In this document: positions 2,101-63,762 of the stretch, piece by piece
Position numbering within the stretch: the stretch's first letter is position 1
How the letters are laid out: the number at the start of each line of letters is the position of its first letter
Source of the DNA: Hamiltosporidium tvaerminnensis FI-OER-3-3
Taxonomy: Eukaryota > Fungi > Microsporidia
Assembly: GCA_022605425.2 (NCBI GenBank)
Contig: CM061255.1
Coordinates: 62,001 to 126,000, forward strand
Direction of reading: 5' to 3'
Length of the DNA stretch: 64,000 nucleotides
Translations under genes and position numbers: made by a program
The notes under the pieces: model-generated
What the model saw: the letters and a program-made list of their open reading frames with translations, nothing else
What the model was told of the DNA's origin: nothing
The model's database searches: none

Positions 2101-2976
2101 TTACCACTTCTCTACTACTACGCTTATTATTAATAACCACATTATTTTCATAAACGTAAAATAGACCACTGACCCTTTATTCCCACTACAGTGCCCCTCC
2201 CACCTACCTAATAGTCCAAACAAAGCAGCAAATAAATAACACCTTAAAATACACATAAGATAACAACAATAAGAAGCCAATTCAAATAACTGTAAATTAA
2301 CAAGAATATTAAAAGTAACCGCATATTTAACAATAGAAGAAGTATTTATAAGCAAAAGGGGTGTTAACAAGTAGAAAAAAGATAAAGTAACATTAAAAGG
2401 TATTTCTTGTTTTCTATTATAATAAAAATCTAAAACTGTTTTATATTCCTCAGTAATTAAATTGTACGAATTTTTACCATACAACATACAAAGTGTAATA
2501 TAAAGTCTTTCTATAGCTACAGTATTATGATAGGATATGACAGGTGGAAAGGTTAAATTTTTTATATTTAAATATTGTATGAAAATATAAACTATAAATA
2601 TCGTTTTGTTGTTGTATGGAAGTATTAGAGACATTAAAATGGTTATTGTTTCTATTCTTGTTAATAAATTGATGTTTTCTTTTCTAAGTGTTGTTATACT
2701 TAGATTGGTTACTGTTAGGTAAGTCAAGGATAAAGTATAACCGTATGTTAAATATAAGAGAGGGGTGTTATCTATAAGAGTACTAACAAGTAAAAGGGTG
2801 TTAACTATGAGGAAGGAAATAAAGGGGGTTAAAGGTAAAAATAGCAATAATGTTCCTAAAAGGGAATAAAATAAGAAGAACGGATGAAATTGTTTTGATA
2901 TTTTGAAAGTTACAAGAGAGAGTTGCATGGAATGTTTTAAAATATTTCTAATCAATTCCTTTGGTTGTTTTATCAT
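2101..2976 (-). CDS. Hypothetical multi-pass membrane protein (291 aa)
   Basis: An 876-bp ORF in very AT-rich DNA with several long hydrophobic segments. An in-frame stop upstream at 3034-3036 bounds the 5' end. No family recognised. Confidence 0.75.
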   Translation of the reverse strand: MIKQPKELIRNILKHSMQLSLVTFKISKQFHPFFLFYSLLGTLLLFLPLTPFISFLIVNTLLLVSTLIDNTPLLYLTYGYTLSLTYLTVTNLSITTLRKENINLLTRIETITILMSLILPYNNKTIFIVYIFIQYLNIKNLTFPPVISYHNTVAIERLYITLCMLYGKNSYNLITEEYKTVLDFYYNRKQEIPFNVTLSFFYLLTPLLLINTSSIVKYAVTFNILVNLQLFELASYCCYLMCILRCYLFAALFGLLGRWEGHCSGNKGSVVYFTFMKIMWLLIISVVVEKW

Positions 2977-3677: not shown

Positions 3678-4404
3678 TTTAATCAAAAATATCACATATT
3701 TTTAAAACAGTGGCAAGTGTTAGATTTGTTTTCATGACATTAACGCAGTTCTAGGTTTAGAATAAATGACTGCTACTCCAACACTCCATCGGTAACCCCT
3801 GCGATATCTACGTCCCAAAGCCTTTCATCTAACAGGTGTGTAGAACCTAATTAATTGGCAAAACAGTTGCCCGAAGTTCGATAATGTCCGTTGCATGGAG
3901 TGTGATCGAAGGCCGAAGCCCCCCCTGGGCTCCCCCAAGACTATGCAGCATTCCCACTTACTCTACACTTTCTGAACCCAATAAAATTCTAGCTAAGATA
4001 TATTTCAGAGACTTACATGGGGTCCACCTAGACAGTGCAATGTCATACCACAGGTATAACCTGCTACTTAGCTTTCCTGGCTTTATATGGTTTTTATTTT
4101 TATATCTCTCAGGCACTAAGTCTTCTAACCCGAGTGATCAAGGCTATGTTTCCATGCTTTTACATGACAATTACCTACATGTTCAGCTGCGGTCTCCGAT
4201 CTAGTTACATAAAAAACTACAAATAAATTTGTAGAAAAAGTTTCTCCATTTCTCAGACCTCTCCCCCTCATAACAATTCCCATGGAAGAACCAAAGATGT
4301 AGTGTGCTTATATTCCCGTTAAAAATCCAAAAATTTATCTTAACACCAGTTTACCATACTCATTGCCAAGCAGAAGGTTTTTTATGTGGTTATCCACCTT
4401 CCAG
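3678..4404 (-). mobile_element. Family L structured non-coding retroposon, copy 1
   Basis: Aligns by eye over its full length with 8509-9235 and with the reverse complement of 43535-44265. It lies between two divergent genes. No clear TSD. Confidence 0.85.
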
Positions 4405-4630: not shown

Positions 4631-6472
4631 ATGAATACCAGTGATAGAAGTATTTCTCATTTAAATAGAATTTTATCGCTTACAAAATGTAAAAACTGTT
4701 TCAAATATAAAATTACAAAAATGAAAATACAATGTCGACATCTTTTATGTTCTGAATGTGATACACTAAGTTGTAAAATATGTTCTAAACATAGTATAGG
4801 TATTGATATACATGTATATACATTTCTTCATGACTTACTTAGTCGTAATTGTAATGAATTAAATGAATTTAAAATTTATCGTAAAAAAGAAGATATTTGG
4901 GTGGAAAGTCAGGAAGTTTTTGAGGAAAATATTTGTGTGAAGAATAATCTTTATAAATATAAGTACGAATCTGAAAAAGAAGGCAAACAGGAATTTTCTG
5001 ATTTGAAAGGAGAAATTATGAATTTAAAAAATATGTTTTTTGGTGAAGAAAAAAATGCGGTGGAAAATAAAAAAAATAATGAAAATGAACCGATTTCTAC
5101 TTTGGCTGAATCTTCATTTGCTATTCCGTTTACAAGTCCCGTTTCAACACAGAAAAGTAATAACGAAAGTAAATTCACTCAATCTGTATCTTCTGATATT
5201 CCAAAAGAAAAGGAAATTAAAAATAAAGAAACCTTATGTGTTACAGGTTTTGATAAAAATATGAATTTAAGAGATAAAGAGAGAACATCTAGACTTATAA
5301 AGGAATCGAAATACGATATAACTGGGAAGAAAATTTCAAATAAAAATAACGAGAATATTGATAAAATTAGTACAAATTTTACAGAAATTTTAAATAAAAA
5401 TAATGAAAATATTGATAAAGTAGGAACAAATTGTACAGAAATTATAAAAAAAGAGAAGCAAATTTTAAATAAAAATAATCAAATTGTTGATATAATGAGT
5501 AAAAATGGTAGAGAAATTATAGAAAAAAATGAGAAGCAAATTTCTAAAAACCGTTTCGATGGTATAAAAATTACCGAAAATGAAACCAACCCCATCATTA
5601 CAACAGAAGATCATCCAAATTCCGAATCAAAAATTTTAAAAAACATTAAAAACTCAATCGAAGATAAAAATATCGATTCTCACAAAAAAACCAAACACGA
5701 AATTTCACCTGAAAAATCTTCTAAAAACCCAATTATTTCACTGACAACAAAATCATGGAAAAATAAAATCACAAAAAACGAAAACTCAACAGAAAATCAA
5801 AACAACTTCTTGCCAAATTTAAAATCCGAACCCCCAAAAAATATAAAAATTTCTCTCCAAAATTCTCCAAATCAGGTAATTCAACCCGAAATACAAAATC
5901 AAACAAATTTAGATGCCTTCGTATTTCTAACCAGTGGACTGTCTTCAGAAGAAAATATTTTTATTTCAAAAACCTTCTGGTCGCTACAAAATAAATTAAA
6001 CATTCCAATCGAAATAAAATCCGAATATTCCTCTTCAATTACACATCTGATTGTAAATATCGATAAAAATGGTTGTTGTTTACGAACATTAAAATATTTA
6101 TTGTGTATTTTGAACGGAGTTAAAGTTGTGTCTTATTCTTGGTATAAAAAACTAATTAAAGTACCTTCAGTAGAAGAAAAGGATTATTTTATAAAAGGTG
6201 ACAATATTTCCGGGGGAAATAACGTTCCTTATCAAATTTATAAAAATGCTCAAAATGGTATTTTTTATTTCAATAAAATTAATTTTTTAATTGAAAAAAA
6301 ATTTATTACAAAAGATTTAAGAAAAGTCATTAAAAATGGAAAAGGAAAAATAAATGAAAATAATTTTGAATTTACCAATTTAAAAGTTCAAAATGAAAAA
6401 GAAATTTATAATTTTATTTCAAATGGAACTTTTCTTAATTATAAAGCGATAAAAAAAGGTAATTTATTGTAA
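4631..6472 (+). CDS. BRCA1/BARD1-like protein (N-terminal C3HC4 RING, low-complexity linker, C-terminal BRCT)
   Basis: RING: CKNC-x12-CRH-x2-CSEC-x4-CKIC. BRCT: FLTSGLSSEE...ITHLIVNIDKNGCCLRTLKYLLCILNGVKVVSYSW...EEKDYFIKGD, matching the BRCA1 BRCT1 pattern (VSGLTPEE...THVV...[22 protein letters not shown]...DFEVRGD). The second BRCT looks truncated. AATAAA overlaps the stop (6472-6477). Confidence 0.85.
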   Translation: MNTSDRSISHLNRILSLTKCKNCFKYKITKMKIQCRHLLCSECDTLSCKICSKHSIGIDIHVYTFLHDLLSRNCNELNEFKIYRKKEDIWVESQEVFEENICVKNNLYKYKYESEKEGKQEFSDLKGEIMNLKNMFFGEEKNAVENKKNNENEPISTLAESSFAIPFTSPVSTQKSNNESKFTQSVSSDIPKEKEIKNKETLCVTGFDKNMNLRDKERTSRLIKESKYDITGKKISNKNNENIDKISTNFTEILNKNNENIDKVGTNCTEIIKKEKQILNKNNQIVDIMSKNGREIIEKNEKQISKNRFDGIKITENETNPIITTEDHPNSESKILKNIKNSIEDKNIDSHKKTKHEISPEKSSKNPIISLTTKSWKNKITKNENSTENQNNFLPNLKSEPPKNIKISLQNSPNQVIQPEIQNQTNLDAFVFLTSGLSSEENIFISKTFWSLQNKLNIPIEIKSEYSSSITHLIVNIDKNGCCLRTLKYLLCILNGVKVVSYSWYKKLIKVPSVEEKDYFIKGDNISGGNNVPYQIYKNAQNGIFYFNKINFLIEKKFITKDLRKVIKNGKGKINENNFEFTNLKVQNEKEIYNFISNGTFLNYKAIKKGNLL

Positions 6473-8508: not shown

Positions 8509-9235
8509 CTTTATTTAAAATATCACATCTTTTATAAAACAGGGGCAAGTGTTATATTTGTTTTCATGACATTAACCCAGTTCTAGGTTTAGAATAAATA
8601 ACTGCTACCTCAAAACTCTATCAGTAACACCTGCGATACCTACGTCCCAAAGCCTTTCATTTACCAGGTGTGTAGAACCTAATTACTAGGCGAGGCAGTT
8701 GCCCGGAGTTCGTTAATGTCCGTTGCATGGAGTGTGATCGAAGGCCGAAGCCCCCCCTGGGCTCCCCCAAGACTATGCAGCATTCCCACTTACTCTACAC
8801 TTTCTGAACCCAATAAACTTCTAGCTAAGATATATTTCAGAGAATTACATGGGGTCCACCTAGATAGTGCAATGTCATACCAACAGGTATAACCTGCTAC
8901 TTAGCTCTCCTGGCTTTAAATGGTTTTTTGTTTTATATCTCCCAGGCGCTAAGTCTTCTAACCCGAGTGAGCAAGGCTAGGTTTCCATGCTTTTACATGG
9001 CAATTACCTACATGTTCAGCTGCGGTCTGCAATCTGGTTACATAAAAAACTACAAATATTTTTTTGAAAAAGTTTCGTTATTTCGTAGACTTTCCTCCTC
9101 ATAACAACTCCTATAAAAAACCGAAGATGTAGTGTGGTTTTATTCCCACCAAAAATCCAAACAATGATCTCACACCAGTTTCACACACTCATTGCCAAGC
9201 AGAAAGTTTTTTATGTGGTTATCCTCCCTCCACTG
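8509..9235 (-). mobile_element. Family L structured non-coding retroposon, copy 2 (22-bp TSD)
   Basis: Full-length copy flanked by the perfect direct repeat CTAAATAATTATAAAATCTTTA at 8492-8513 and 9236-9257. The element's terminal TAAAG overlaps the TSD. Confidence 0.92.
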
Positions 9236-15976: not shown

Positions 15977-16697
15977 GTGGAGGGAGGATAACCACATAAA
16001 AAACTTTCTCTTGGCAATGAGTGTCTGAAACTGGTATAAGGATCATTGCTCATTTTTTTGGTAAGGCTCAAATCACACTACATCTTCGGTTGTTCCATGA
16101 TAATTGTTATAAGGAAGAAAGGTCTAAGAAATAGCGAAACTTTTTTACAAATTTATTGTGAGTTTTATGTAACTGGATCAAAGGCCGCAGCCAAACACAT
16201 ATGTAATGGCCATGTATAAGCATGAAAACCTAGCCTTGTTCATTCGGGCTAGAAGACTTAGTGCCCGGGAGATATAAAAATATAAACCATTAAAAGCCGG
16301 GAGAGCTAAGTAGCAGGTTATACTTGTTGGTATAACATTGCACTGTCTAGGTGGAACTCATTTAATTCTCCGAAATATATCTTAGCTAGAACTTCATTGG
16401 GTTCAGGAAGTGTAGAGTAAGGGGGAAGGCTGCATAGTCTTAGTGGAGCTTAGGGTAAGTTCCGCCTTCGATTACAATCCATGCAACCGACATTAACGAA
16501 CTCCGGTCAACTGTCTCGCCTATAAATTAGGTTTTACATACCTGGTAGATGAAAGGCTTCGAGACATAGGTATCGCAGTAGGTACTGATAAAGTGTTGGG
16601 TAGCAGTTATTTATGCTAACCTAGAACTTCGTTAATGTCATGAAAACAAATATAAAACTTGCCACTGTTTTAAAAGATGTGATACTTTACAATAAAG
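15977..16697 (+). mobile_element. Family L structured non-coding retroposon, copy 3
   Basis: Begins GTGGAGGGAGGATAACCACATAAAAAACTTTC and ends GATGTGATACTTTACAATAAAG. Collinear with copy 5. No clear TSD. Confidence 0.9.
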
Positions 16698-17011: not shown

Positions 17012-17240
17012 CTCACTCACTTACTTACTTATTCCATTCCGATTTTACTTTTAAGTGTCGATGGAACAATTAAAGTTTAATATTTGTTTTTGTTAATCGG
17101 TTGTAACTCGGAGTTATAGGGATTGGCCAATAGATCAAGTGTGGTCTATATCCCTCAAAAAAGGCAATAATGAATCACAAGCCAACTCTACGTACTTATT
17201 GCCAACTAGCTGATTTTTAATTGAGCTATCCTCTCTCCAC
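17012..17240 (-). mobile_element. Family S short SINE-like element, copy 1
   Basis: The minus strand reads GTGGAGAGAGGATAG...TTGGCAATAAG (family-L-type head)...CCCTATAACTCCGAGTTACAACCGA...TGTTCC...GGAATGGAATAAGTAAGTAAGTGAGTGAG. Collinear with 59956-60180. Confidence 0.8.
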
Positions 17241-28648: not shown

Positions 28649-31600
28649 CAAAGACATATTCTTAAAAAGCAAAATTAGGCTTATCATTTTTATACAATAT
28701 GTTTCAGCATTTTTAAAAAAGTATTTTATATCCCGTTTTTAGAAGTAGGTTTTATTAAACCTAAAAAAATATAACCAAAATCCAATATTTAAAAAAAGCT
28801 TTTGAATCCTATTTCACAGTTATATAATGAAATATTTTTTTTAGAATTATAAAAGTCTCGAACTAGGTTCTGACTAGAAACTATAATAATTTACTTTACA
28901 AACGCTTAACTAGAAAAAAATTTTATATCAAGTATATATTTTATATGGCTAACAAATAAACAATGTTAGAATTTAAAAGGCATTAAAGCATTATCTTACC
29001 AAAATAGTAAAGTAAATTTTAAAGTTTAATTATCAATATATCTTGCTATTTCATCGTTAGCCACCCGAAAGCTGATCTAATATAACCAATCACACCCTAA
29101 TTCATTTTAATCTCATACAATATACGTTTTTCGCTAAAAATTTAAGCAAAAAAAAGGCTACGAAAATGTCATAAGATAGTATAATATCAAAAGAGATGCA
29201 AATATTTTAATTAACGAATCTTATTGAATTCTTAGGACAAATATTTAAATTTAATTTATTATAAAGTTATCAAATTTTTATAAATTGAAATATAGTTCGA
29301 TCATATGTTTTTTTACGCTATATTTATAATAATTTTTAATTTAGTGCGTTCTTAGATAGAAAAAAAGTCCTTTGTTATCAAATATATTCCCGACTTTTAA
29401 ATATTTTTTATATGCAAACGACTTAAATCAAAAAACTACTATAATTTATGGACGCGATTTAAAGATAATAATCATACTAAAAAGGTTTTCTACCAAAATT
29501 TCATTAAAATGATAAAGAACGTGTAAATTCCTTGCGAAATGAAAACCACACGACATTTTCGTTTTTTCATTACAATTTACACAGGGAAGAGATAGTATGC
29601 AAAATTAAAAAAATACCAAGCTTTATTTTGTGTTTTCTGCAATTAGAAACGAACTTCGACCAAGAAGTTAGGAAATGTGATCTTAAAGCATATTTCCTTG
29701 TTCTTCGATTACAAGACCATGACTTAGGATATATATTTCATATAATGTAAAGCCATGGATTGCTATATTTCAAAGCGTCTTTTTGGCATGGCTTTGCAAC
29801 GTATAAGTGCCCAAATAAAAGTCGTCAAGCTATATCTTAGCAGAAAGTCTATTTGGTTCAATAAGAGTAGTTTATATTGCAAACAGTCGGGTTTAGGAGC
29901 AAGCCTAAATCAAGAGTCGTTTCTTTACTTTTGGTTCAGGCAAACAAGATTTAAGACATCGGAAAGATCCAGCCTATTTAAAAGTTATAAGCATGCTGAA
30001 TCAAAATTAACCCGATAAGGTTTCGTATTGGAGACCAATCTAGTATAAGAACCAGAATTTCGCAAAGAAATATTCTGCTGCTGTGCGCGTAACCGATAGT
30101 ACTTGTAGCCTTGTCTTTTAAGATTTAAGTATTACAAAACAGCCAAATTTGAAAATACTGACAATTTTTCTTAGAACGTAGAACTATTATAATTATTTGA
30201 GTAAATTTATAAATATATTTTGCTTTAGTATACAAAATGAATTGCATTTTTCTTAATATTTACACACTAAAACAATTTTACCTAGAATTAATAATCATTC
30301 TTTTGTTCGGATTAAGTTTTGATGAAATTATATTGATCTAAATCTTTTTACACATAACACAGCGGGTAGTGCGATCGTTATTATAGGCTTTTGAGCAGAA
30401 TTTTTTTATTCATAGTTAACTGTATAATTTCGGTAACGATCTATATAAAATATTTTTTATTATATCAGAATTTCACATTTAATATCTTGTTTGTTAGGAC
30501 CTTTTTTAATTTCTAACAAACTTAAGAATGCATATTTGGCAACAATTATGGAATTTACAATAAAAAACAGGATATTTGGGAAAATAAATGGGTCTACAAT
30601 GTATTAATAAATCATAATCTTTAAAATAATATATTATTAAAAGAGCCAACTCCTTATTATATACACATTTTCGATTTTTAAATCTTTTAGAAAGTTAGTT
30701 GATTAGAAAAACAGGTATTTATAAATAGCCCAAAAATTTATAAAAGAACGATTGATTCTATAATAAATATTGATATCCGGAATAACAAAACAACTACCTT
30801 AGGCTAATAGATCGTTTATTTTAGATTCTGCAGTTAAGAAGTATGGGTGATAAAAATTAATATAAAACACATAATATGTTATTCAAATTGCGTAATTTTT
30901 TATACGAACTATATAGTATTTGCTGACTATGAAAGCCTAAACATTTCAAAAAAGAAATAGTTAGATTTGACAAATGAGCTATCTGCATACTAAAGAGCTG
31001 TTTTATAATTTAAAATTTTAGAAGCTACATATGAAATTTTTAAAAATATGTAAAATGCATATTCAAGTAAAAATAGTTTGATTCTTATATTGCAGAAAAA
31101 TGTTTTTTTGTTCGGGTAAAAAAGTTTTGATTTTTAAAAAGCAGTCTTCTATCTCATTTTTCATCCATGATGGCCTTTAATGATTTAATACCCGGATAAA
31201 CCTCGAAAATATTTTTTCATCTTTTGACTAACATTATAGAGAATTCCAATTTAGGCTTATTGACAGATTTGCTCATATGTAAAGCTTGATTTTTCATGCT
31301 CTGTTTAACCATAGAATCAACTGATGCGTATTTAACACACTAATTTATATTGTGCTTAATTTATTCTATCTCATAAAAACGTATTGGGAACAATGACAAC
31401 AGTTGCGTTCTAAAAAAGCTACGTTTTTTGGTTTTAAGAATTTACCTTAATCATAAAAGCAGAAAATTTAGAATTTTAACATTTACAAAAAACAATATTT
31501 ATTTTAAATTGATTTGACTTAGAATATATTAAATATGTGTCTCTTCTAATCTATGCTTAAAAATAAAAAAATAGTGATCATGTGTCTATTCTATCGGAGG

Positions 31601-35049: not shown

Positions 35050-35761
35050 GAGAATGGATAACCTCATAAAAAACTATCTGCCTGGCAACGAGTTTGGGAA
35101 ATAGTGTGAAGATGATTGTTTAGATTTTTGCTGGGAATAAAACCACACTAGATCTTCGGTTGTTCTATGGCTGTTTTTATGAAGAGTAGAAATCTAAAAA
35201 ATGGCGAAACTTTTTTTACAAATATATTTGCGTTTTTTATGTAACCGGATCAAAGGCCGAGACACACGTAGGATATTTCCATGTAAAAACATAAAGTTAG
35301 CCTTGCTCCCTCGAATTATAAGACTAAATACCTGTGAGATATGAAAATAATCACCAATTAAATCCGGGAGAGCTAAGTAGTAGGTTATACCTGTTGGTAT
35401 GGCATTGCACTTTCCAAGTGGACATCGTGTAAGTCTTGGAATATATCTTAGCATAAAGTAAAATGAGTTTAGAAAGTGTAGAACAGGTAAGAATACTGCA
35501 TAGTCTTTGAGCGCGAGGGGGGTTTCGGCCTGCATAACACGTAATGCAACAGACATTAACATACTCCGGGCGACTGTCTCGCCTATTAATTAAATTTTAA
35601 ATGTCTGTTCGATGAAAGCCTTTGGGACGTAGGAATCGAAAAAGGTACTGATGGTGTGTTGAGATAGCAGTTATTTATGTCAAACCTAGAATCGAGTTGA
35701 TGTCTAGGAAACAAATATAACACTTGCCACAGATTTAAATGATGTAATAATGTAATCAAAG
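35050..35761 (+). mobile_element. Family L structured non-coding retroposon, copy 4 (more diverged)
   Basis: GGATAACCTCATAAAAAACTATCTGCCTGGCAACGAG...GCTAAGTAGTAGGTTATACCTGTTGGTAT...CAAATATAACACTTGCCAC. Full length and collinear with copy 5. Confidence 0.88.
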
Positions 35762-42626: not shown

Positions 42627-43534
42627 TGTTTTTCGAGTTTTTCAATCGTCAAATTAATTCTAAGGTATCTATGTATAAAAAATGATAAATTTTAATCTTT
42701 CTATAGTGAACCCGTCGACTCGGCCATAAATATTAAAAAAAAGAGAGCTTTTTGCATTTTGTAATTAATTTACTTTATTCAATAGCGAAAAATGGTAACA
42801 AATATATTAATTTTATACTTTTTTAAATGTATCAAAGAAAAAAGAATTCTTTTAAACTATTATCTTATAAAAACTCTAAGCAAATTATATTGACAAAATA
42901 AAATTTGCAAAACGTTTTATGAATTACATTATAAAAGGAACCAAAAATCTATATTATGTTCTGAGAATTTTAAAAATTATTATTTATTTTCGTGGCAGTA
43001 TAGCTGCTTGTAAATGGTAATTTCTTTTAAATTTTTGTTTATAACCTTATAGTTTATATCTTTATCTATAAATATAATGAATTATTGTATATGTCTTACT
43101 CTATTATTTATAATCTTCATAATCTTTAATAATGTTTGTTCATTTTTATAGATTTGGAACTTTCAAAATTTAATTTATGCTATTGTTTTACCCGTGGACT
43201 CTAAAAACAATAAAATAGTTTATTGGTAGGTATTTCAAAAAATTCTGTTATAAAAAAACATATCTAATTTCCAATATGTCTTTTACTTTTATTTCGACAA
43301 AATTTATACAATATATTCTAGTTCGTATATTTGCTCATATTGTACACCGCATGTAATACGATTTAGCAATAAATTTTTAGTTTTTCTGTGATTTTTTCAA
43401 TTTTTACGATACAAATCTTTTTTTGTTGATAAACTAAAAATAATTTACAAACACAAGTAAATAGTATTAATTGAATAGATATCAAAGAAATTTTCGAGGT
43501 ATTTTAACAAAATATAAGAATTTTGTAATGTAAT

Positions 43535-44265
43535 TGGTGGAGGGAGGATAACCACATAAAAAACTTTCTGCTTGGCAATGAGTGTGTGAAACTGGTGTGA
43601 GATCATTGTTTGGATTTTTAGTGAGAATACAACCACACTACATCTTCGGTTGTTCCATGGGAGTTGTTATGAGGAGGAGAGGTCTAAGAAATGGAGAAAC
43701 TTTTTCTACGAATTTATTTGTAGTTTTTTATGTAACCAGATTGCAGACCGCAGCTGAACATGTAGGTAATTGCCATGTAAAAGCATGGAAACCTAGCCTT
43801 GCTCACTCGGGTTAGAAGACTTAGCGCCTGGGAGATATAAAAATAAAACCCATTAAAAGCCAGGAAAGCTAAGTAGCAGGTTATACCTGTTGGTATGACA
43901 TTGCACTGTCTAGGTGGACCCCATGTAAATCTCTGAAATATATCTTAGCTAGAAGTTTATTGGGTTCAGAAAGTGTAGAGTAAGTGGGAATGCTGCATAG
44001 TCTTGGGGGAGCCCAGGGGGGGCTTCGGCCTTCGATCACACTCCATGCAACGGACATTAACGAACTCCGGGCAACTGCCTCGCCTATTAATTAGGTTCTA
44101 CACACCTGGTAGATGAAAGGCTTTGGGACGTAGGTATCGCAGGGGTTACCGATGGAGTGTTGGGGTAGCAGTCATTTATGTTAAACCTAGAACTGCGTTA
44201 ATGTCATAAAAACAAATATAACACTTGCCACTATTTTAAAAAAGATGTGATACTTTTAAATAAAG
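43535..44265 (+). mobile_element. Family L structured non-coding retroposon, copy 5 (12-bp TSD; best-preserved copy)
   Basis: 731 bp from TGGTGGAGGGAGGATAACCAC to GTGATACTTTTAAATAAAG, flanked by TTGTAATGTAAT at 43523-43534 and 44266-44277. Confidence 0.93.
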
Positions 44266-45744
44266 TTGTAATGTAATAATATAGGGAAATATTACATTTT
44301 TTCTCTAAATGACGAACTTAAGAAAAGTTATATCCTTAAAAACTAAGTAAAAAAGATGTTATATAGGTTACTGGTAATTTGATTAAAAGAAAGCAATAAA
44401 TTGGTAAAATTTGTCTTATTAGTGTTAATTAGTAGAAATCACTACAAAAAATTCATTTATTAGTCTTTACTATATAATTCTTACTTATTTTATAAATGTG
44501 TTCTAAAATTTAATTCCCATATTGGTTTTTGAGAAATGCATTGCTACAATAATAAGAAAGGAACGCTAATAAAACCTAATGCAACTTCAAAAATTATTGT
44601 TCTTTATCCATTTAAAAATAATATTGATATTTAAAAATCCGGTATTGGATAAAGATTCAAATCCTATTATAGCTTATATTTAAAATGAAGTTCTAAAAAA
44701 AACATTTTTACTTTATTTAAAATTTTTCCCGAGGAATTTATAAAATTTAAAACTGTGTGTTATCGGATTTATATATAAGGAAATAATGTTTTGTTACAAA
44801 TGCAAAAAAAGTATATTTTAACTTTTAGCTAAATATGCACTTTATTAGAACCAGATTTTAGAATACAAGTTTCTGTATCATATACGCCATATAATTATCC
44901 ATAAAATTTCGAGGAATTACAAATTAACAGCCAAATTGATTCATATTAGTGTTTAATTAAGCCAACAATAAAACTTTGACCGGTGTTTGTAATCTCATTC
45001 TAAATAAAAAGTATTCATTTCAAAAATATTCCGTTAATTTGAATCTGTTGATAAAAAAAGTATTAAAGACTCACAAGAGCGTATTTGCCTATTTTCATAA
45101 TTTTGCAGACCAAAGTATGCTAACTATTTTAATTCTAATGGCAATGGGTTTCTTCTTTTATCAGTTTTCTTGACTTTTAATTATCTTATATAGTCTTTTG
45201 TAGCATATTTGGGCTCCGAATTAAAACATGGTCTTGATTTTAGTTTTATAATTTAGCTTAGATTTAGTGAATATATAAAAGTCAAGATAGATTATTTTCC
45301 AAAAAAAATCAATGCTATCTGTTACAAATATAAATTCTGTAATAAAAGCTATCGGTTGGAATTTGTTTGATGTTTTTCAGATTGTTAAAAAACTATAAGT
45401 TAGAATCGAACTTTATTTCTAGCGTATATTGTTTGCAGTGTCATTATTATTTTTTCTATCTTAATTTTTTTGTAACTTGTAGGAATTTGAAGCGAAGACT
45501 ATGTATGTGACGCACTTGGCTATACACTAGGTTTAAATGCAAATTTTGTGCTATATTTTTTAAAAAAATATGATGCATAAGGCAATAAGTTCATCATGTA
45601 TCTTGATAATACAGTTTTGTCTATATAAAAATAACAAAAGAATACTAATCAAACATCTGATATTTTTTAGATATTCAAAATATCTGTAAAAATATATATA
45701 CTAAGATTTGGAAATCTTTTAGCTTTATTTCTTTCATAATAAAC

Positions 45745-45915
45745 TTGAGGAAGGATAAACCCATAAAAAACTGTCGACTTGATAATTAGTGTGTGAAATT
45801 TATAACCAGATTCTAGTTAACATTCTGGTGGGATATAAATCACAATTGATTTTTATGCGAATTTCCTAAAATCCTGAGTTACAGCGCTTTAAAGAGACAA
45901 AACCAATATTTAAAG
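45745..45915 (+). mobile_element. Family S short SINE-like element, copy 3 (degenerate; 3' part not recognisable)
   Basis: GAGGAAGGATAAACCCATAAAAAACTGTC...AGTGTGTGAAA...GGTGGGATATAAATCACA...CCTAAAATCCTGAGTTACA. Confidence 0.65.
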
Positions 45916-57639: not shown

Positions 57640-58336
57640 TTACTTGATAAATATCACATTATTTTTGAAGAAGCAGCTGTTATGTCTTTTTCATGAAATA
57701 AATACGGTTTTTGGTCCTAAATAAATGCCTGCTATCTCACACTCCATCTCTATATATACCTAAATCAAAAATATTTTATATAAAAGATGAGCAGATTTGA
57801 TTTTATTGGCAAAGCAATTGCTCTAAATGTGTCAATTTTTGTTTTCTGATATATATAAACGCGAGCCAAACCCAACTCTGGTCTGTCCAAAGACCTGCAG
57901 CATCATCTCTCACTTTGCACTTACCGACTTAATAAACTCTTCGCTAAAATATTATCTTTTGATCATATTGAATCATCTTAGACTGTTCAATTGCATATAA
58001 ACGTACCTAGCCTGGTGCCGGTTTGCGGCATTTTAATGGAATTTTTTTTCTTCCAGGCGCCATGCCCCCAGACGCGTAAGCCTGAATTTCTATACCTTTA
58101 CATGGTATTTACTCACAGGTTAAATGTGATATGTAATTTTCTAGAGTTAGAACTACAACCAAGTTAATATAAAACGTATACTTTTTTGCAGACCTCTCTT
58201 TCTTATGGGAAATAAGATAGGCGATTATAAAGTTAGCAAGATTTTTATTCTATCAAAATTGCAAAAAAATATTTTTCTACCTATTTTACATTAAATTTAC
58301 GAAGCAGATGATTTATAAGTTTTTATCACCCGCCAT
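57640..58336 (-). mobile_element. Family L structured non-coding retroposon, copy 6 (old, highly degenerate)
   Basis: Collinear anchors on the plus strand: AAATATCACAT, TTTTCATGA, ATAAATGCCTGCTA, CACTCCATC, CAAAGACCTGCAGCAT, AATAAACT, CCAGGCGC, TTTACATGG, AGACCTCTC, AAGCAGA, TTATCACCCGCCA. Confidence 0.75.
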
Positions 58337-59955: not shown

Positions 59956-60180
59956 GTGAAGAGAGAATAGTCACATGCAAAACTATCTGCTTGGCAATGA
60001 GTCAATAACATTTGTATTTAAATCATTTCTACCATTTTTTGGATATAAACTACAATGAATTTATAGGGGATCCCCTATAATCTAAAATTACAACCGAGTA
60101 AAAAAAAATATGTAAAACTTTCAGTTGTTCCTCCTCGATATCAAAAGATAAAAGAGGAATGGAATAGGAAAGTAACTAAG
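59956..60180 (+). mobile_element. Family S short SINE-like element, copy 4
   Basis: Head GTGAAGAGAGAATAGTCACATGCAAAACTATCTGCTTGGCAATGAG, body CCCTATAATCTAAAATTACAACCGA, and 3' end TGTTCCTC...GAGGAATGGAATAGGAAAGTAACTAAG. Confidence 0.8.
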
Positions 60181-61551: not shown

Positions 61552-63762
61552 CTACCCTTTACCTATATACTTCTCTTTAATCTCTTCATAGACTTTCCTT
61601 ACATAAAACACTTTATCTTTTTCTAACTTACTTACTAAACTAAGACCCTTTATTCCCATAGTCTCTATAACCTTTAACATTAGAATAACCCTATATCTCC
61701 AATCATTACTGTTATTTAACATATTCTCAATAATTATTACTTTAAATTCTTCTTCATAGTAATTTAACACCTCCATCATACAACCTATAAAATTCTTTCT
61801 TATATTATCATTACTAACACTTACATCTGTTATTATTCTTTTTAAAGATAAAGAGGTACATTCAAAGACACTTAAACCACTTAATAACTCTGAAATTAAA
61901 TAAGGATAATTAGTACTATTGTTTAAAGGGGTGTTAATATCAATAGAGGGGGTGTTATTACTACTACTGTTGTTTAATAGGGTGTTACTATTGCCTAACA
62001 GGTTGCTATTACTGTCTAACAGTGTGTTATTACTACTGTTATCTAACAGGTTATTACTACTACTGTCTAACAGGGTGTTAATACTATTGTCTAACAGGGT
62101 GTTATCATTACTGTTGTCTAACAGGTTATTACTACTACTGTCTAACAGGGTGTTATTACTACTGTTGTCTAATAACCTATTATCATTACTACTAGTACCT
62201 GTGTTATATGTCTCATCATTAAAGGGTGTTATATTACCTAATATATCATTACTATTATAACACCCTTTATTATCTTCTCCTTCTATAACAGTAATATCAT
62301 CTACCTTTAATTCATTTAACCCTTTATCTTTAGATTTATTTCCTAAAGCCTCTTTAATAGAGGGTAATGAACAAAGGGTGTTAATAATAGGAACAGTAGA
62401 GGTATTATTAAAAGTGTTATCACCAAAGGGTATTTCCTCAGTAGTGTTATTAAAGGGTATTTCCTCAGTAGTGTTATTATTAAAGGGTACTTCCTTATCA
62501 CTAAAGGGTACTTCCTTATTAACACCCTCTATTTCCTTTATAACCTCTTCATCCTTATTAACACCCTCTAATCCCTTTATACCCTCTAATTCCTTTATAC
62601 CCTCTTCATCCTTATTAACACCCTCTAATCCCTTTATACCCTCTTCTTCCTTATTAACACCCTCTAATCCCTTTATACCCTCGTCATCCTTATTAACACC
62701 CTCTATTTCCATTATACCCTCTTCTTCCTTATTAACACCCTCTTCATCCTTATTAACTCCCTCTAATTCCTTATTAACACCCCCCTCTCCTATATCACTA
62801 TACTTACTTTCCTTCCCTTTAAATTTACTGTTATTTTCACTTTCCTTAATAACACGTACAACATTAACAAGCCATTTACATAAAACACTTCTTATTTTAT
62901 CACCCCACATCCAATACATACAAACATAAAGCATAACCATTTCTTTTATATTATAATACTTTATAAAGTAACCATAACACCCTGCTAATGGTATACATTC
63001 ATTTACAGATGAACTTGGTGAATTAAGAAGATTAACAGTTGTTTTTACATAATTTATAAGTAAATTAACAGGTATATCTATAGAGGGTGTTATTATACTG
63101 TAAATACTTTTTAAGTATTCTTTAGAAATATAACTAGTAACAGGGTGATAGGTAGTAAGGGGGTGATAATTATTAGGTGTGTTAGTAAGAGGGTGTTGGT
63201 TGGATGGTGTGTTAATAAGGGGGTGATAATTATTAGTACTGTTGTTATCACCCTGTTGTTTAGTAGTACTATGACTAACACCCTCTAATACACTATCCTT
63301 ATCACTAACACCCTCCATCATATCCCTACTATTGCTAACACCCTCTAATACACTATCCTTGTCATTAACACCCTCTAATACACTACTACTGTTACTAACA
63401 CCCTCTAATACAGTATCCTTATCACTAACACCCTCTAATACACTACTACTGTTATTAACACCCTCTAATACACTATCCTTGTTATTAACACCCTCTAATA
63501 CACTACTACTGTTATTAACACCCTCCAATCTACTACTATCATTATCACCCCCTAATATACCCTTGTTATTAATACACCTATTCCATATAGATTTATAAAC
63601 ATAAAGACATATTTCAATATCAGATTCTATAAGACTATTAACACCCTTTAATACCTCTTTACAATATATTCTATCTAAATATTTAGCACATATTATCTTA
63701 TTAGAGGTGTTAGCATTACAATAATTATTATATATATTATAAAGGGTGTTATCCTTAAACAT
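61552..63762 (-). CDS. Repeat-expanded protein with HEAT-like C-terminus (weak PP2A-A/PP4R1-like motifs); probably the 3' part of a longer gene
   Basis: 736-aa ORF. Helical segments end ...NDWRYRVILM...LVSKLEKDKVFYVRKV, which are HEAT-type WRxR and LxxDxVxxVR motifs. They are interrupted by (LEGVNNSSSV)n, (HPLTNTP)n, (EGVNKEE)n and (NTLLDSS)n arrays. The frame stays open upstream to 63864. Confidence 0.75.
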   Translation of the reverse strand: MFKDNTLYNIYNNYCNANTSNKIICAKYLDRIYCKEVLKGVNSLIESDIEICLYVYKSIWNRCINNKGILGGDNDSSRLEGVNNSSSVLEGVNNKDSVLEGVNNSSSVLEGVSDKDTVLEGVSNSSSVLEGVNDKDSVLEGVSNSRDMMEGVSDKDSVLEGVSHSTTKQQGDNNSTNNYHPLINTPSNQHPLTNTPNNYHPLTTYHPVTSYISKEYLKSIYSIITPSIDIPVNLLINYVKTTVNLLNSPSSSVNECIPLAGCYGYFIKYYNIKEMVMLYVCMYWMWGDKIRSVLCKWLVNVVRVIKESENNSKFKGKESKYSDIGEGGVNKELEGVNKDEEGVNKEEEGIMEIEGVNKDDEGIKGLEGVNKEEEGIKGLEGVNKDEEGIKELEGIKGLEGVNKDEEVIKEIEGVNKEVPFSDKEVPFNNNTTEEIPFNNTTEEIPFGDNTFNNTSTVPIINTLCSLPSIKEALGNKSKDKGLNELKVDDITVIEGEDNKGCYNSNDILGNITPFNDETYNTGTSSNDNRLLDNSSNNTLLDSSSNNLLDNSNDNTLLDNSINTLLDSSSNNLLDNSSNNTLLDSNSNLLGNSNTLLNNSSSNNTPSIDINTPLNNSTNYPYLISELLSGLSVFECTSLSLKRIITDVSVSNDNIRKNFIGCMMEVLNYYEEEFKVIIIENMLNNSNDWRYRVILMLKVIETMGIKGLSLVSKLEKDKVFYVRKVYEEIKEKYIGKG
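63273..63535 (-). repeat. 30-bp coding minisatellite (LEGVNNSSSV / LEGVSDKDSV alternating)
   Basis: About nine in-frame units of TTAGAGGGTGTTA(A/G)T..., alternating between two variants. Confidence 0.85.

Follow-up and report, generated by a model that had tools for sequence, protein, structure and literature searches.

A recently active ~730-nt SINE-like element from the genome of the microsporidian Hamiltosporidium tvaerminnensis

A sequence of about 730 nt lies at positions 43535–44265 (+ strand) of a 64,000-nt stretch of the genome of Hamiltosporidium tvaerminnensis FI-OER-3-3 (hereafter the window), and further copies of it are scattered through the same window. It was originally predicted to be a non-coding, heavily structured RNA-like element that spreads by retrotransposition. 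The locus raises the question of whether the repeated sequence is a retroposon in its own right or the trace of a structured cellular RNA and, if it is a retroposon, which enzyme copies it.

Copies in the window and in the genome

We found six full-length copies of the element within 54.6 kb of the window, in both orientations and in very unequal states of decay, as predicted. BLASTN recovered five of them, and a profile search added the sixth together with a partial copy and head-only matches. Relative to the copy at 43535–44265 (the focal copy), the identity is 92% for copy 1 (3678–4403, − strand), 94% for copy 2 (8509–9233, −), 86% for copy 3 (15977–16697, +) and 79% for copy 4 (35054–35752, +). 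Copy 6 (57645–58326, −) is full length and very decayed, matching model positions 14–724 with an nhmmer E-value of 3e-38, and the partial copy (29527–29871, +), which is also decayed, covers model positions 80–445. The ends of the element are fixed, running from GTGGAGGGAGG... to ...TTAAATAAAG across copies, and they contain no terminal inverted repeats. No ORF is conserved: the majority-rule sequence of the copies, which we computed for the statistics on ORFs and variants, holds at most 77 codons on either strand, and a 122-codon minus-strand ORF occurs in copy 4 alone. The window as a whole has about 25% GC and very few long ORFs. ARAGORN found no tRNA in the window, and no Pfam family was found in its four longest ORFs.

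We then searched the whole genome (21,638,905 bases in 17 contigs), whose SSU rRNA fits the microsporidian SSU model of Rfam along the full length with 1,208 bits. The search gave 1,461 first-look candidates, and the 40 that were scored are all full length with 98–100% identity. The focal copy is 98–99% identical to at least 40 further genomic copies. A 21-mer from the body of the element has 514 matches with at most two mismatches on many contigs (251 forward and 263 reverse), and the reversed control has none. Since this 21-mer is present in only three of the six window copies, the 514 matches indicate a total of about 1,000 copies or more. We count no fewer than 514 well-preserved copies in the genome and estimate a probable total of 1,000–1,500, or ~3–5% of the genome length. 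Contig depths summed over the element are ~3,000 times those of unique flanks in run X1 (DNA); such a depth ratio is not a copy number, and its order of magnitude agrees with the copy estimate. A single 189-nt contig, of uncertain molecule type, was obtained from run X20, and the raw RNA run X24 contains no reads of the parasite at all. Of the 31-mers of the family, 89–93% are present in runs X16 and X18.

The copies span a range from ~99% to ~70% identity. When we searched with copy 4, no older subfamily was found and the best matches were young copies with 80% identity, indicating that the old copies have decayed individually. Variants carried by many copies occur at ~20–30 positions, which shows that there are several young master lineages. 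The insertion of the focal copy can be seen by comparison with a 5,462-nt contig of run X17, which joins position 43522 directly to 44266. The flanks of this contig differ by ~1.2%, and the sequence missing from it is exactly the element with one of the two TSD copies. Such a precise empty site in another isolate indicates that the focal copy inserted recently and is absent from some lineages. The ~730-nt element is real, abundant and recently active.

Integration signatures and modular anatomy

The boundaries of the focal copy are given by the empty-site contig and by its TSD, an identical 12-mer (TTGTAATGTAAT) found upstream at 43523–43534 and downstream at 44266–44277; the upstream 12-mer is the single copy kept in the empty allele. 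TSDs of 12 and 22 bp had been reported. A length of 12 bp is confirmed for the focal copy, and the TSD of copy 2 (core ATTTTATAATTATTTAG) has 17–21 bp, the length being ambiguous because the AAAG end of the element also matches the target. Variable TSD lengths had been taken as the mark of target-primed reverse transcription, and the TSDs are indeed not of fixed length: automatic detection found them in 25 of 31 copies, with lengths of 10–20 bp (mode 12–15), and those of the copies L008, L010 and L019 were added by manual inspection.

Both junctions carry additional signatures. At the 3' junction, the terminal AAATAAA(G) is separated from the TSD by 0–11 filler bases, often beginning with G or GT. 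At the 5' junction, GTGGAGG is preceded by 1–3 extra bases, which vary and usually have G as the last base. In the focal copy, the templated start (GTGGAGG) is at ~43537, and 43535–43536 are such extra bases. L010 and L019 have three and one extra tandem copies, respectively, of the first 21 nt, which form a GUGG...CCAC hairpin. These extra copies are located inside the TSDs, indicating that they were made during integration, and they fit template jumping or re-copying at the 5' end of the RNA. In L008, the element is followed by a 10-nt extension, then by A15 and then by the TSD. This A15 is what a polyadenylated template would leave behind and is indirect evidence of one, and L008 is the only one of the 31 copies with a poly(A) tail. 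Together with the variable TSDs, the empty site in another isolate and a terminus in common with LINEs, these junction signatures strongly support the prediction that the element spreads by retrotransposition.

The same features bear on the alternative of a solo LTR, a DNA transposon (for example a MITE) or a piece of a Helitron, all of which could be short, non-coding and present in high copy number. However, the element has neither TG...CA ends nor terminal inverted repeats, and its TSDs vary between 10 and 20 bp, whereas a solo LTR would have a fixed TSD of 4–6 bp. The fillers, the extra 5' bases, the re-copied 5' hairpins and the A15 tail are all signs of an RNA intermediate. At the sampled loci, no internal coding element lies between paired copies. 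We assign hardly any probability to this alternative, which is effectively refuted by the ends, the TSDs and the junction signatures.

The target sites are AT-rich, and the start of the TSD is T-rich. Targeting of sites just upstream of start codons was considered and rejected, as an ORF of ≥100 aa starts ≤50 nt downstream in only two of 30 copies. Two of 30 young copies (L023 and L028) adjoin the ends of LINE-A/B elements, which shows only that the elements cluster.

The element has a modular anatomy. Its 5' head of ~105–125 nt (43537–43650, + strand, in the focal copy), which contains two GGUGG...CCAC hairpins, is common to a separate ~220-nt retroposon family, here named the S family, with 72–85% identity. 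The S family has its own TSDs of 8–13 bp and a different, (TAAG)n-like tail, and one of its copies is found in the window at 59956–60180 (+). The head also occurs in a distinct element at 45747–45900 (+), which has only the 5' head region in common, and as a head-only match at 17132–17240 (−; nhmmer, model positions 3–111), which is either an S-type or a truncated element. The remaining ~600 nt, the body, are specific to the ~730-nt family. In blastn and tblastx comparisons of the element with 24 LINE and rRNA loci, only other copies of the element in the flanks of these loci matched, indicating that the body is neither a deleted LINE nor a piece of rRNA. The terminal 9–10 nt, TTAAATAAA(G), recur at the termini of resident LINEs. 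The 3' terminal motif of the focal copy, TTAAATAAAG (44256–44265, +), contains an AAUAAA/UAAA poly(A)-signal motif.

No tRNA, 5S or 7SL head had been recognised in the element, and ARAGORN and Rfam likewise gave no match. The Rfam search returned nothing at the gathering score for the whole window, nothing at E ≤ 10 for the element, including a 5' HDV-like ribozyme, and nothing at E ≤ 10 for the S-family loci. Scans of metagenomes with a head motif and with a body motif gave 0 matches each.

The absence of coding capacity, the variable TSDs, the high copy number, the subfamilies and the insertion polymorphism agree with the SINE-like non-coding element of the original prediction. In the strict sense, a SINE has a tRNA, 7SL or 5S head with an internal Pol III promoter; the ~730-nt element has no such Pol III-type head and thus falls outside this narrow textbook definition. 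We conclude that it is very probably a non-autonomous, non-coding, SINE-like non-LTR retroposon of ~730 nt, the RNA of which is copied by a LINE RT by target priming. A more specific reading would make the head a novel SINE 5' module, namely a microsporidian promoter (for Pol II or of an unusual Pol III type), a 5'-end element, or a derivative of a microsporidian small RNA. This module would have acquired different bodies and tails that match LINEs, and a central hairpin (described below) and the body would be needed for recognition by the RT. We regard this more specific reading as rather unlikely.

RNA folding and copy variation

The fold of the element and the variation among its copies bear on another explanation, namely that a highly structured, functional ncRNA of the cell gave rise to the copies as retro-pseudogenes and that their mobility is a by-product. 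The element is GC-richer than its flanks (42% versus ~25%), as had been noted, which would suit such an RNA. The stems listed in the original prediction could each be located where it had placed them. However, the element as a whole has an MFE of −203 kcal/mol, and its z-score relative to dinucleotide shuffles is only −1.53 (+ strand) or −1.27 (− strand), which does not bear out a heavily structured RNA. In sliding windows, only element positions ~181–400 reach z-scores of about −2.7 to −2.95, a point in favour of the ncRNA. This region includes the central hairpin, ACTTAGC-G-CCTGG / CCAGG-AAA-GCTAAGT, at 43819–43874 (+), which is predicted with pair probabilities of 0.93–1.0. A second hairpin, GGGGGC-UUCG-GCCUUC at 44018–44033 (+), is predicted with pair probabilities of 0.93–0.97, and the stability of these two hairpins would also suit a structured RNA. 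The domain surrounding the UUCG hairpin has a z-score of ~0, as does the GC-rich 3' domain that had been thought to be structured. The 10-bp stem 44053–44062/44196–44205, which had been proposed to close a domain, has an ensemble probability of about zero, and a perfect inverted repeat of ≥10 nt arises in 16% of mononucleotide shuffles.

The copies were also compared for changes that preserve pairing. The change in copy 3 that had been claimed as compensatory is not compensatory. The family majority has CCTGG/CCGGG with a U·G pair at this site, from which the CCCGG of copy 3 is a one-sided change to C-G, and the CCAGG of the focal copy is the other one-sided change, to U-A. Among the copies compared, no pair has changes on both sides, and the decayed copy 4 (79%) breaks the stem of the central hairpin. 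Shared variants are found in predicted stems less often than singletons (Fisher p = 0.004, raw), as would be expected if a functional RNA were behind the copies. However, this depletion disappears after matching for base identity: unpaired sites then have no excess of shared variants (p = 0.36). Inserted copies decay neutrally and thus cannot reveal selection on structure, for which a comparison of master lineages or of species is needed. Apart from one or two local hairpins, RNA structure is therefore neither proven nor disproven.

Neither the fold, nor the copy variation, nor Rfam lends support to the proposal of retrocopies of a structured ncRNA. Moreover, a head in common with another mobile family and a terminus in common with LINEs are the architecture of a dedicated retroposon, and about 1,000 near-full-length copies with subfamilies indicate amplification from master copies rather than the occasional formation of pseudogenes. 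We therefore consider the ncRNA origin improbable, and the ~730-nt element gives no grounds for proposing a new class of structured RNA.

Candidate partner LINEs and proposed mechanism

We then investigated the RT-coding loci of the genome, of which there are hundreds (466 candidates). The dominant group, LINE-A/B/C, has members that are 83–85% identical in DNA and 3.8 kb in length, with a single ORF of ~1,255 aa that is intact in dozens of copies. The LINE-A/B/C copies terminate with ...TTATTAAATAAA, directly abutting the TSD. Four LINE-B/C copies (L046–L049) are 3.79 kb long, start 0–9 nt before the ATG, have TSDs of 11–15 bp and end exactly at ...TTAAATAAA. The RT domain (residues 507–746) resembles L1 ORF2p (6.5e-18) and R2 proteins (5e-13). 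In the C-terminal part, a strongly conserved CCHC motif (residue 979) is followed by RPD...IEV, and by these motifs the domain resembles a restriction-like endonuclease. Pfam and a PDB profile search gave no support for a restriction-like endonuclease in this C-terminal domain, and the structure model of the domain (pLDDT 38.7) was too poor for a fold search.

The terminus and the TSD range that LINE-A/B/C and the ~730-nt element have in common suggest that LINE-A/B/C is the mobilising partner, and it is our leading candidate, with modest confidence. A local alignment between the tails of the element and LINE-A is not significant (p = 0.25), the identity comprising only 9 A/T-rich nt. Alternatively, the same kind of element might be mobilised by LINE-D, a putative APE-type LINE with an ORF of ~850–915 aa, the N-terminus of which gives a weak hint of an APE domain (Exo_endo_phos, E = 0.029). 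The 3' UTR of LINE-D extends to ...TTATTAAATAAAG. It runs to ...GTGAATTACATGTTATTAAATAAAG and the element ends with ...GATGTGATACTTTTAAATAAAG, the last 10 nt being identical, including the final G, and the local alignment of the two tails is modestly significant (p ~0.01–0.02) against shuffles and genomic segments. The identity between LINE-D copies falls just past AAAG, suggesting that the LINE ends there. However, all five sampled LINE-D copies lie inside shared, duplicated blocks near contig ends, so that the 3' end and the dispersal of LINE-D are putative. LINE-A/B/C is far more abundant than LINE-D, is dispersed like the element and has many intact ORFs, and its TSDs match the range of the element and directly abut TTAAATAAA. 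LINE-D is a possible partner, of clearly lower probability than LINE-A/B/C.

We propose that a source copy of the element would be transcribed, probably by RNA polymerase II, into an RNA that ends at or just past the terminal UUAAAUAAAG, a sequence that would double as the poly(A) signal of the species. The RT of a resident LINE, most likely the abundant single-ORF 3.8-kb LINE-A/B/C, would then prime on a nicked AT-rich target and copy the RNA from its terminal motif. The outcome would be TSDs of 10–20 bp, a few 3' fillers and, at the 5' junction, either additional bases or repeated copies of the 5' hairpins. The element itself would be built from the head in common with the S family, presumably a transcription or 5'-end module, the GC-richer body and the LINE-like terminus.

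The choice of polymerase can be judged from the sequence of the element. As the original prediction pointed out, internal T runs (T5, T5 and T6) speak against ordinary Pol III transcription. These runs, the terminal AAUAAA, the A15 tail of L008 and the frequent extra 5' G lead us to favour Pol II. An extra 5' G is known for capped templates. UAAA/AAUAAA motifs are enriched upstream of the 3' ends of mRNAs in this species (PMC10542269).

The closest known system is that of EhSINE1 and EhSINE2 with EhLINE1/2 in Entamoeba histolytica. The EhSINEs are not known to have a tRNA, 7SL or 5S head; they give rise to polyadenylated transcripts and have a 3' end in common with their LINE, and the EhLINEs carry a restriction-like endonuclease. 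EhSINEs are non-coding and present in hundreds of copies, with TSDs of 8–20 bp, T-rich targets and strain polymorphism, and they already reach 0.5–0.7 kb, so that the ~730-nt element is not the unusually long SINE that it had seemed (PMC3716655). Both systems comprise a long non-coding retroposon with variable TSDs and insertion polymorphism in an AT-rich parasite genome of ~20 Mb. On the other hand, the two have no detectable sequence relationship and belong to hosts of different phyla. The ~730-nt element differs further in having no internal tandem repeats, in having only the 9–10-nt terminus in common with a LINE, and in having a 5' head that also occurs in another, shorter family.

Classical Pol III SINEs derived from tRNA, 7SL or 5S RNA (Alu, B2, SINE3 and others) resemble the ~730-nt element in their head-body-tail modules, LINE dependence, high copy number, subfamilies and TSDs. 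In contrast, the head of the ~730-nt element matches no tRNA and no Rfam family, its sequence contains T5–T6 runs and a terminal AAUAAA, and it is longer than most SINEs. R2-type RTs leave 3' fillers and additional 5' bases, and they can jump from the end of one template to another, copying the 5' end of the RNA again. The junctions of the ~730-nt element have the same features, and in its candidate partner an RT is followed by CCHC and RPD..E motifs, as in R2/R4-type elements with their restriction-like endonuclease, the type of endonuclease in the candidate partner being suggested by these motifs. Unlike R2/R4-type insertions, those of the ~730-nt element are dispersed and not site-specific. 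Pol II composite retroposons, such as the hominid SVA and the trypanosome RIME/ingi, are also non-autonomous, longer than a typical SINE and mobilised by LINEs in trans. The ~730-nt element differs from them in that its body has no similarity to the sampled LINEs, and is thus not an internally deleted LINE, and in that it usually has no poly(A) tail.

The published H. tvaerminnensis assembly comprises 21.64 Mb in 17 contigs with 26.6% GC, and 39.56% of it consists of interspersed repeats, with 25.45% classed as 'other' (PMC10542269; PMC12449221). No SINE is reported among its repeats (PMC10542269; PMC12449221; PMC7313128). In full-text literature searches, we found no described SINE family in Hamiltosporidium and no characterised one in microsporidia. 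Papers based on RepeatModeler class such sequence as unknown or other. The mechanism, that of a LINE-dependent non-autonomous retroposon, is already known, and the family itself is new.

Microsporidia with large genomes are a model for the re-expansion of reduced parasite genomes, and the ~730-nt family would reassign a sizeable share of the unclassified repeats to LINE-driven retroposition. Its insertions may serve as presence/absence markers for population work on this parasite of Daphnia, and the LINE/SINE pair, with its very short UTRs, may help us study how an RT chooses its template. If the head proves to be a novel SINE 5' module, this would become the first SINE system to be dissected in a microsporidian, and one of the main forces behind the expansion of microsporidian genomes.

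Arrangement of the element copies

We placed reads on window positions 42800-45000, a region spanning the 730-nt element (43535-44265, +). In several of the read contigs, two element copies are joined 3' end to 5' end with just 14-29 nt separating them, and many contigs of single-copy depth show internal deletions 68-367 nt long. It follows that adjacent copies in head-to-tail order and copies missing internal sequence are both common. LINE-A or LINE-B, members of the abundant 3.8-kb LINE, lies downstream of the element copy at two sampled loci, L023 and L028. In this pair, one element copy and a LINE-A copy directly adjoin each other tail to tail, at the 3' end of the LINE, and the ATG of a LINE-B copy lies ~55 nt downstream of another element copy. 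The retroelements are clustered.

The 730-nt element has its 5' head in common with another retroposon family, ~220 nt in length, whose body is distinct from that of the 730-nt element. This family or its head is found in the window at 45747-45900, 59956-60180 and 17132-17240, and the family recurs at loci L056-L064 (around position 1500-1720). Its copies end in a (TAAG)n-like tail (…GTAAGTAAG) and are flanked by TSDs of 8-13 bp; none of the sampled loci yielded a LINE bearing this tail. Around 60.6-60.8 kb, the window contains a short tandem repeat (ATTCTATTATTCCT-like). The three longest window ORFs, at 4631-6472 (+), 61552-63762 (-) and 2101-2976 (-), encode 613, 736 and 291 aa, respectively, and have no Pfam match.

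The dominant LINE and LINE-D

The dominant LINE (L043-L049; for example, L046:4560-8420 (-) and L047:4540-8319 (+)) is 3.8 kb long with a single ORF of ~1,255 aa. Its 5' UTR is essentially absent, as copies start 0-9 nt before the ATG, immediately past the TSD. The 3' UTR is just ~45 nt and terminates in TTAAATAAA. Copies of LINE-D, the second candidate partner, are found on five contigs, ~50-185 kb from the contig ends (L036, L037, L038, L040 and L042 on C13, C16, C2, C14 and C3), and their downstream flanks are shared over more than 700 nt and occur in two variants. These copies sit either within duplicated blocks near contig ends or within a repeated target sequence.

Other features of the LINE families

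Several LINE families (L031, L034-L040 and L050) have a stem-loop directly 3' of the ORF2 stop codon. The loop TTGGCC is constant and the stem sequences vary, as in TTAGCTA-TTGGCC-TAGCTAA and GTTAGTA-CTTGGCC-ATACTAAC, which looks like covariation in a candidate 3' UTR recognition hairpin.

At L051 (C1:615500-625499), a LINE with two ORFs has an APE domain (Exo_endo_phos, 4.6e-11) and ends in an (ATTTT)n tail. It lies a few kb away from an rRNA unit whose SSU rRNA is at C1:628303-629605. This position agrees with the published location of specific LINEs between tail-to-tail rRNA operons (PMC12449221).
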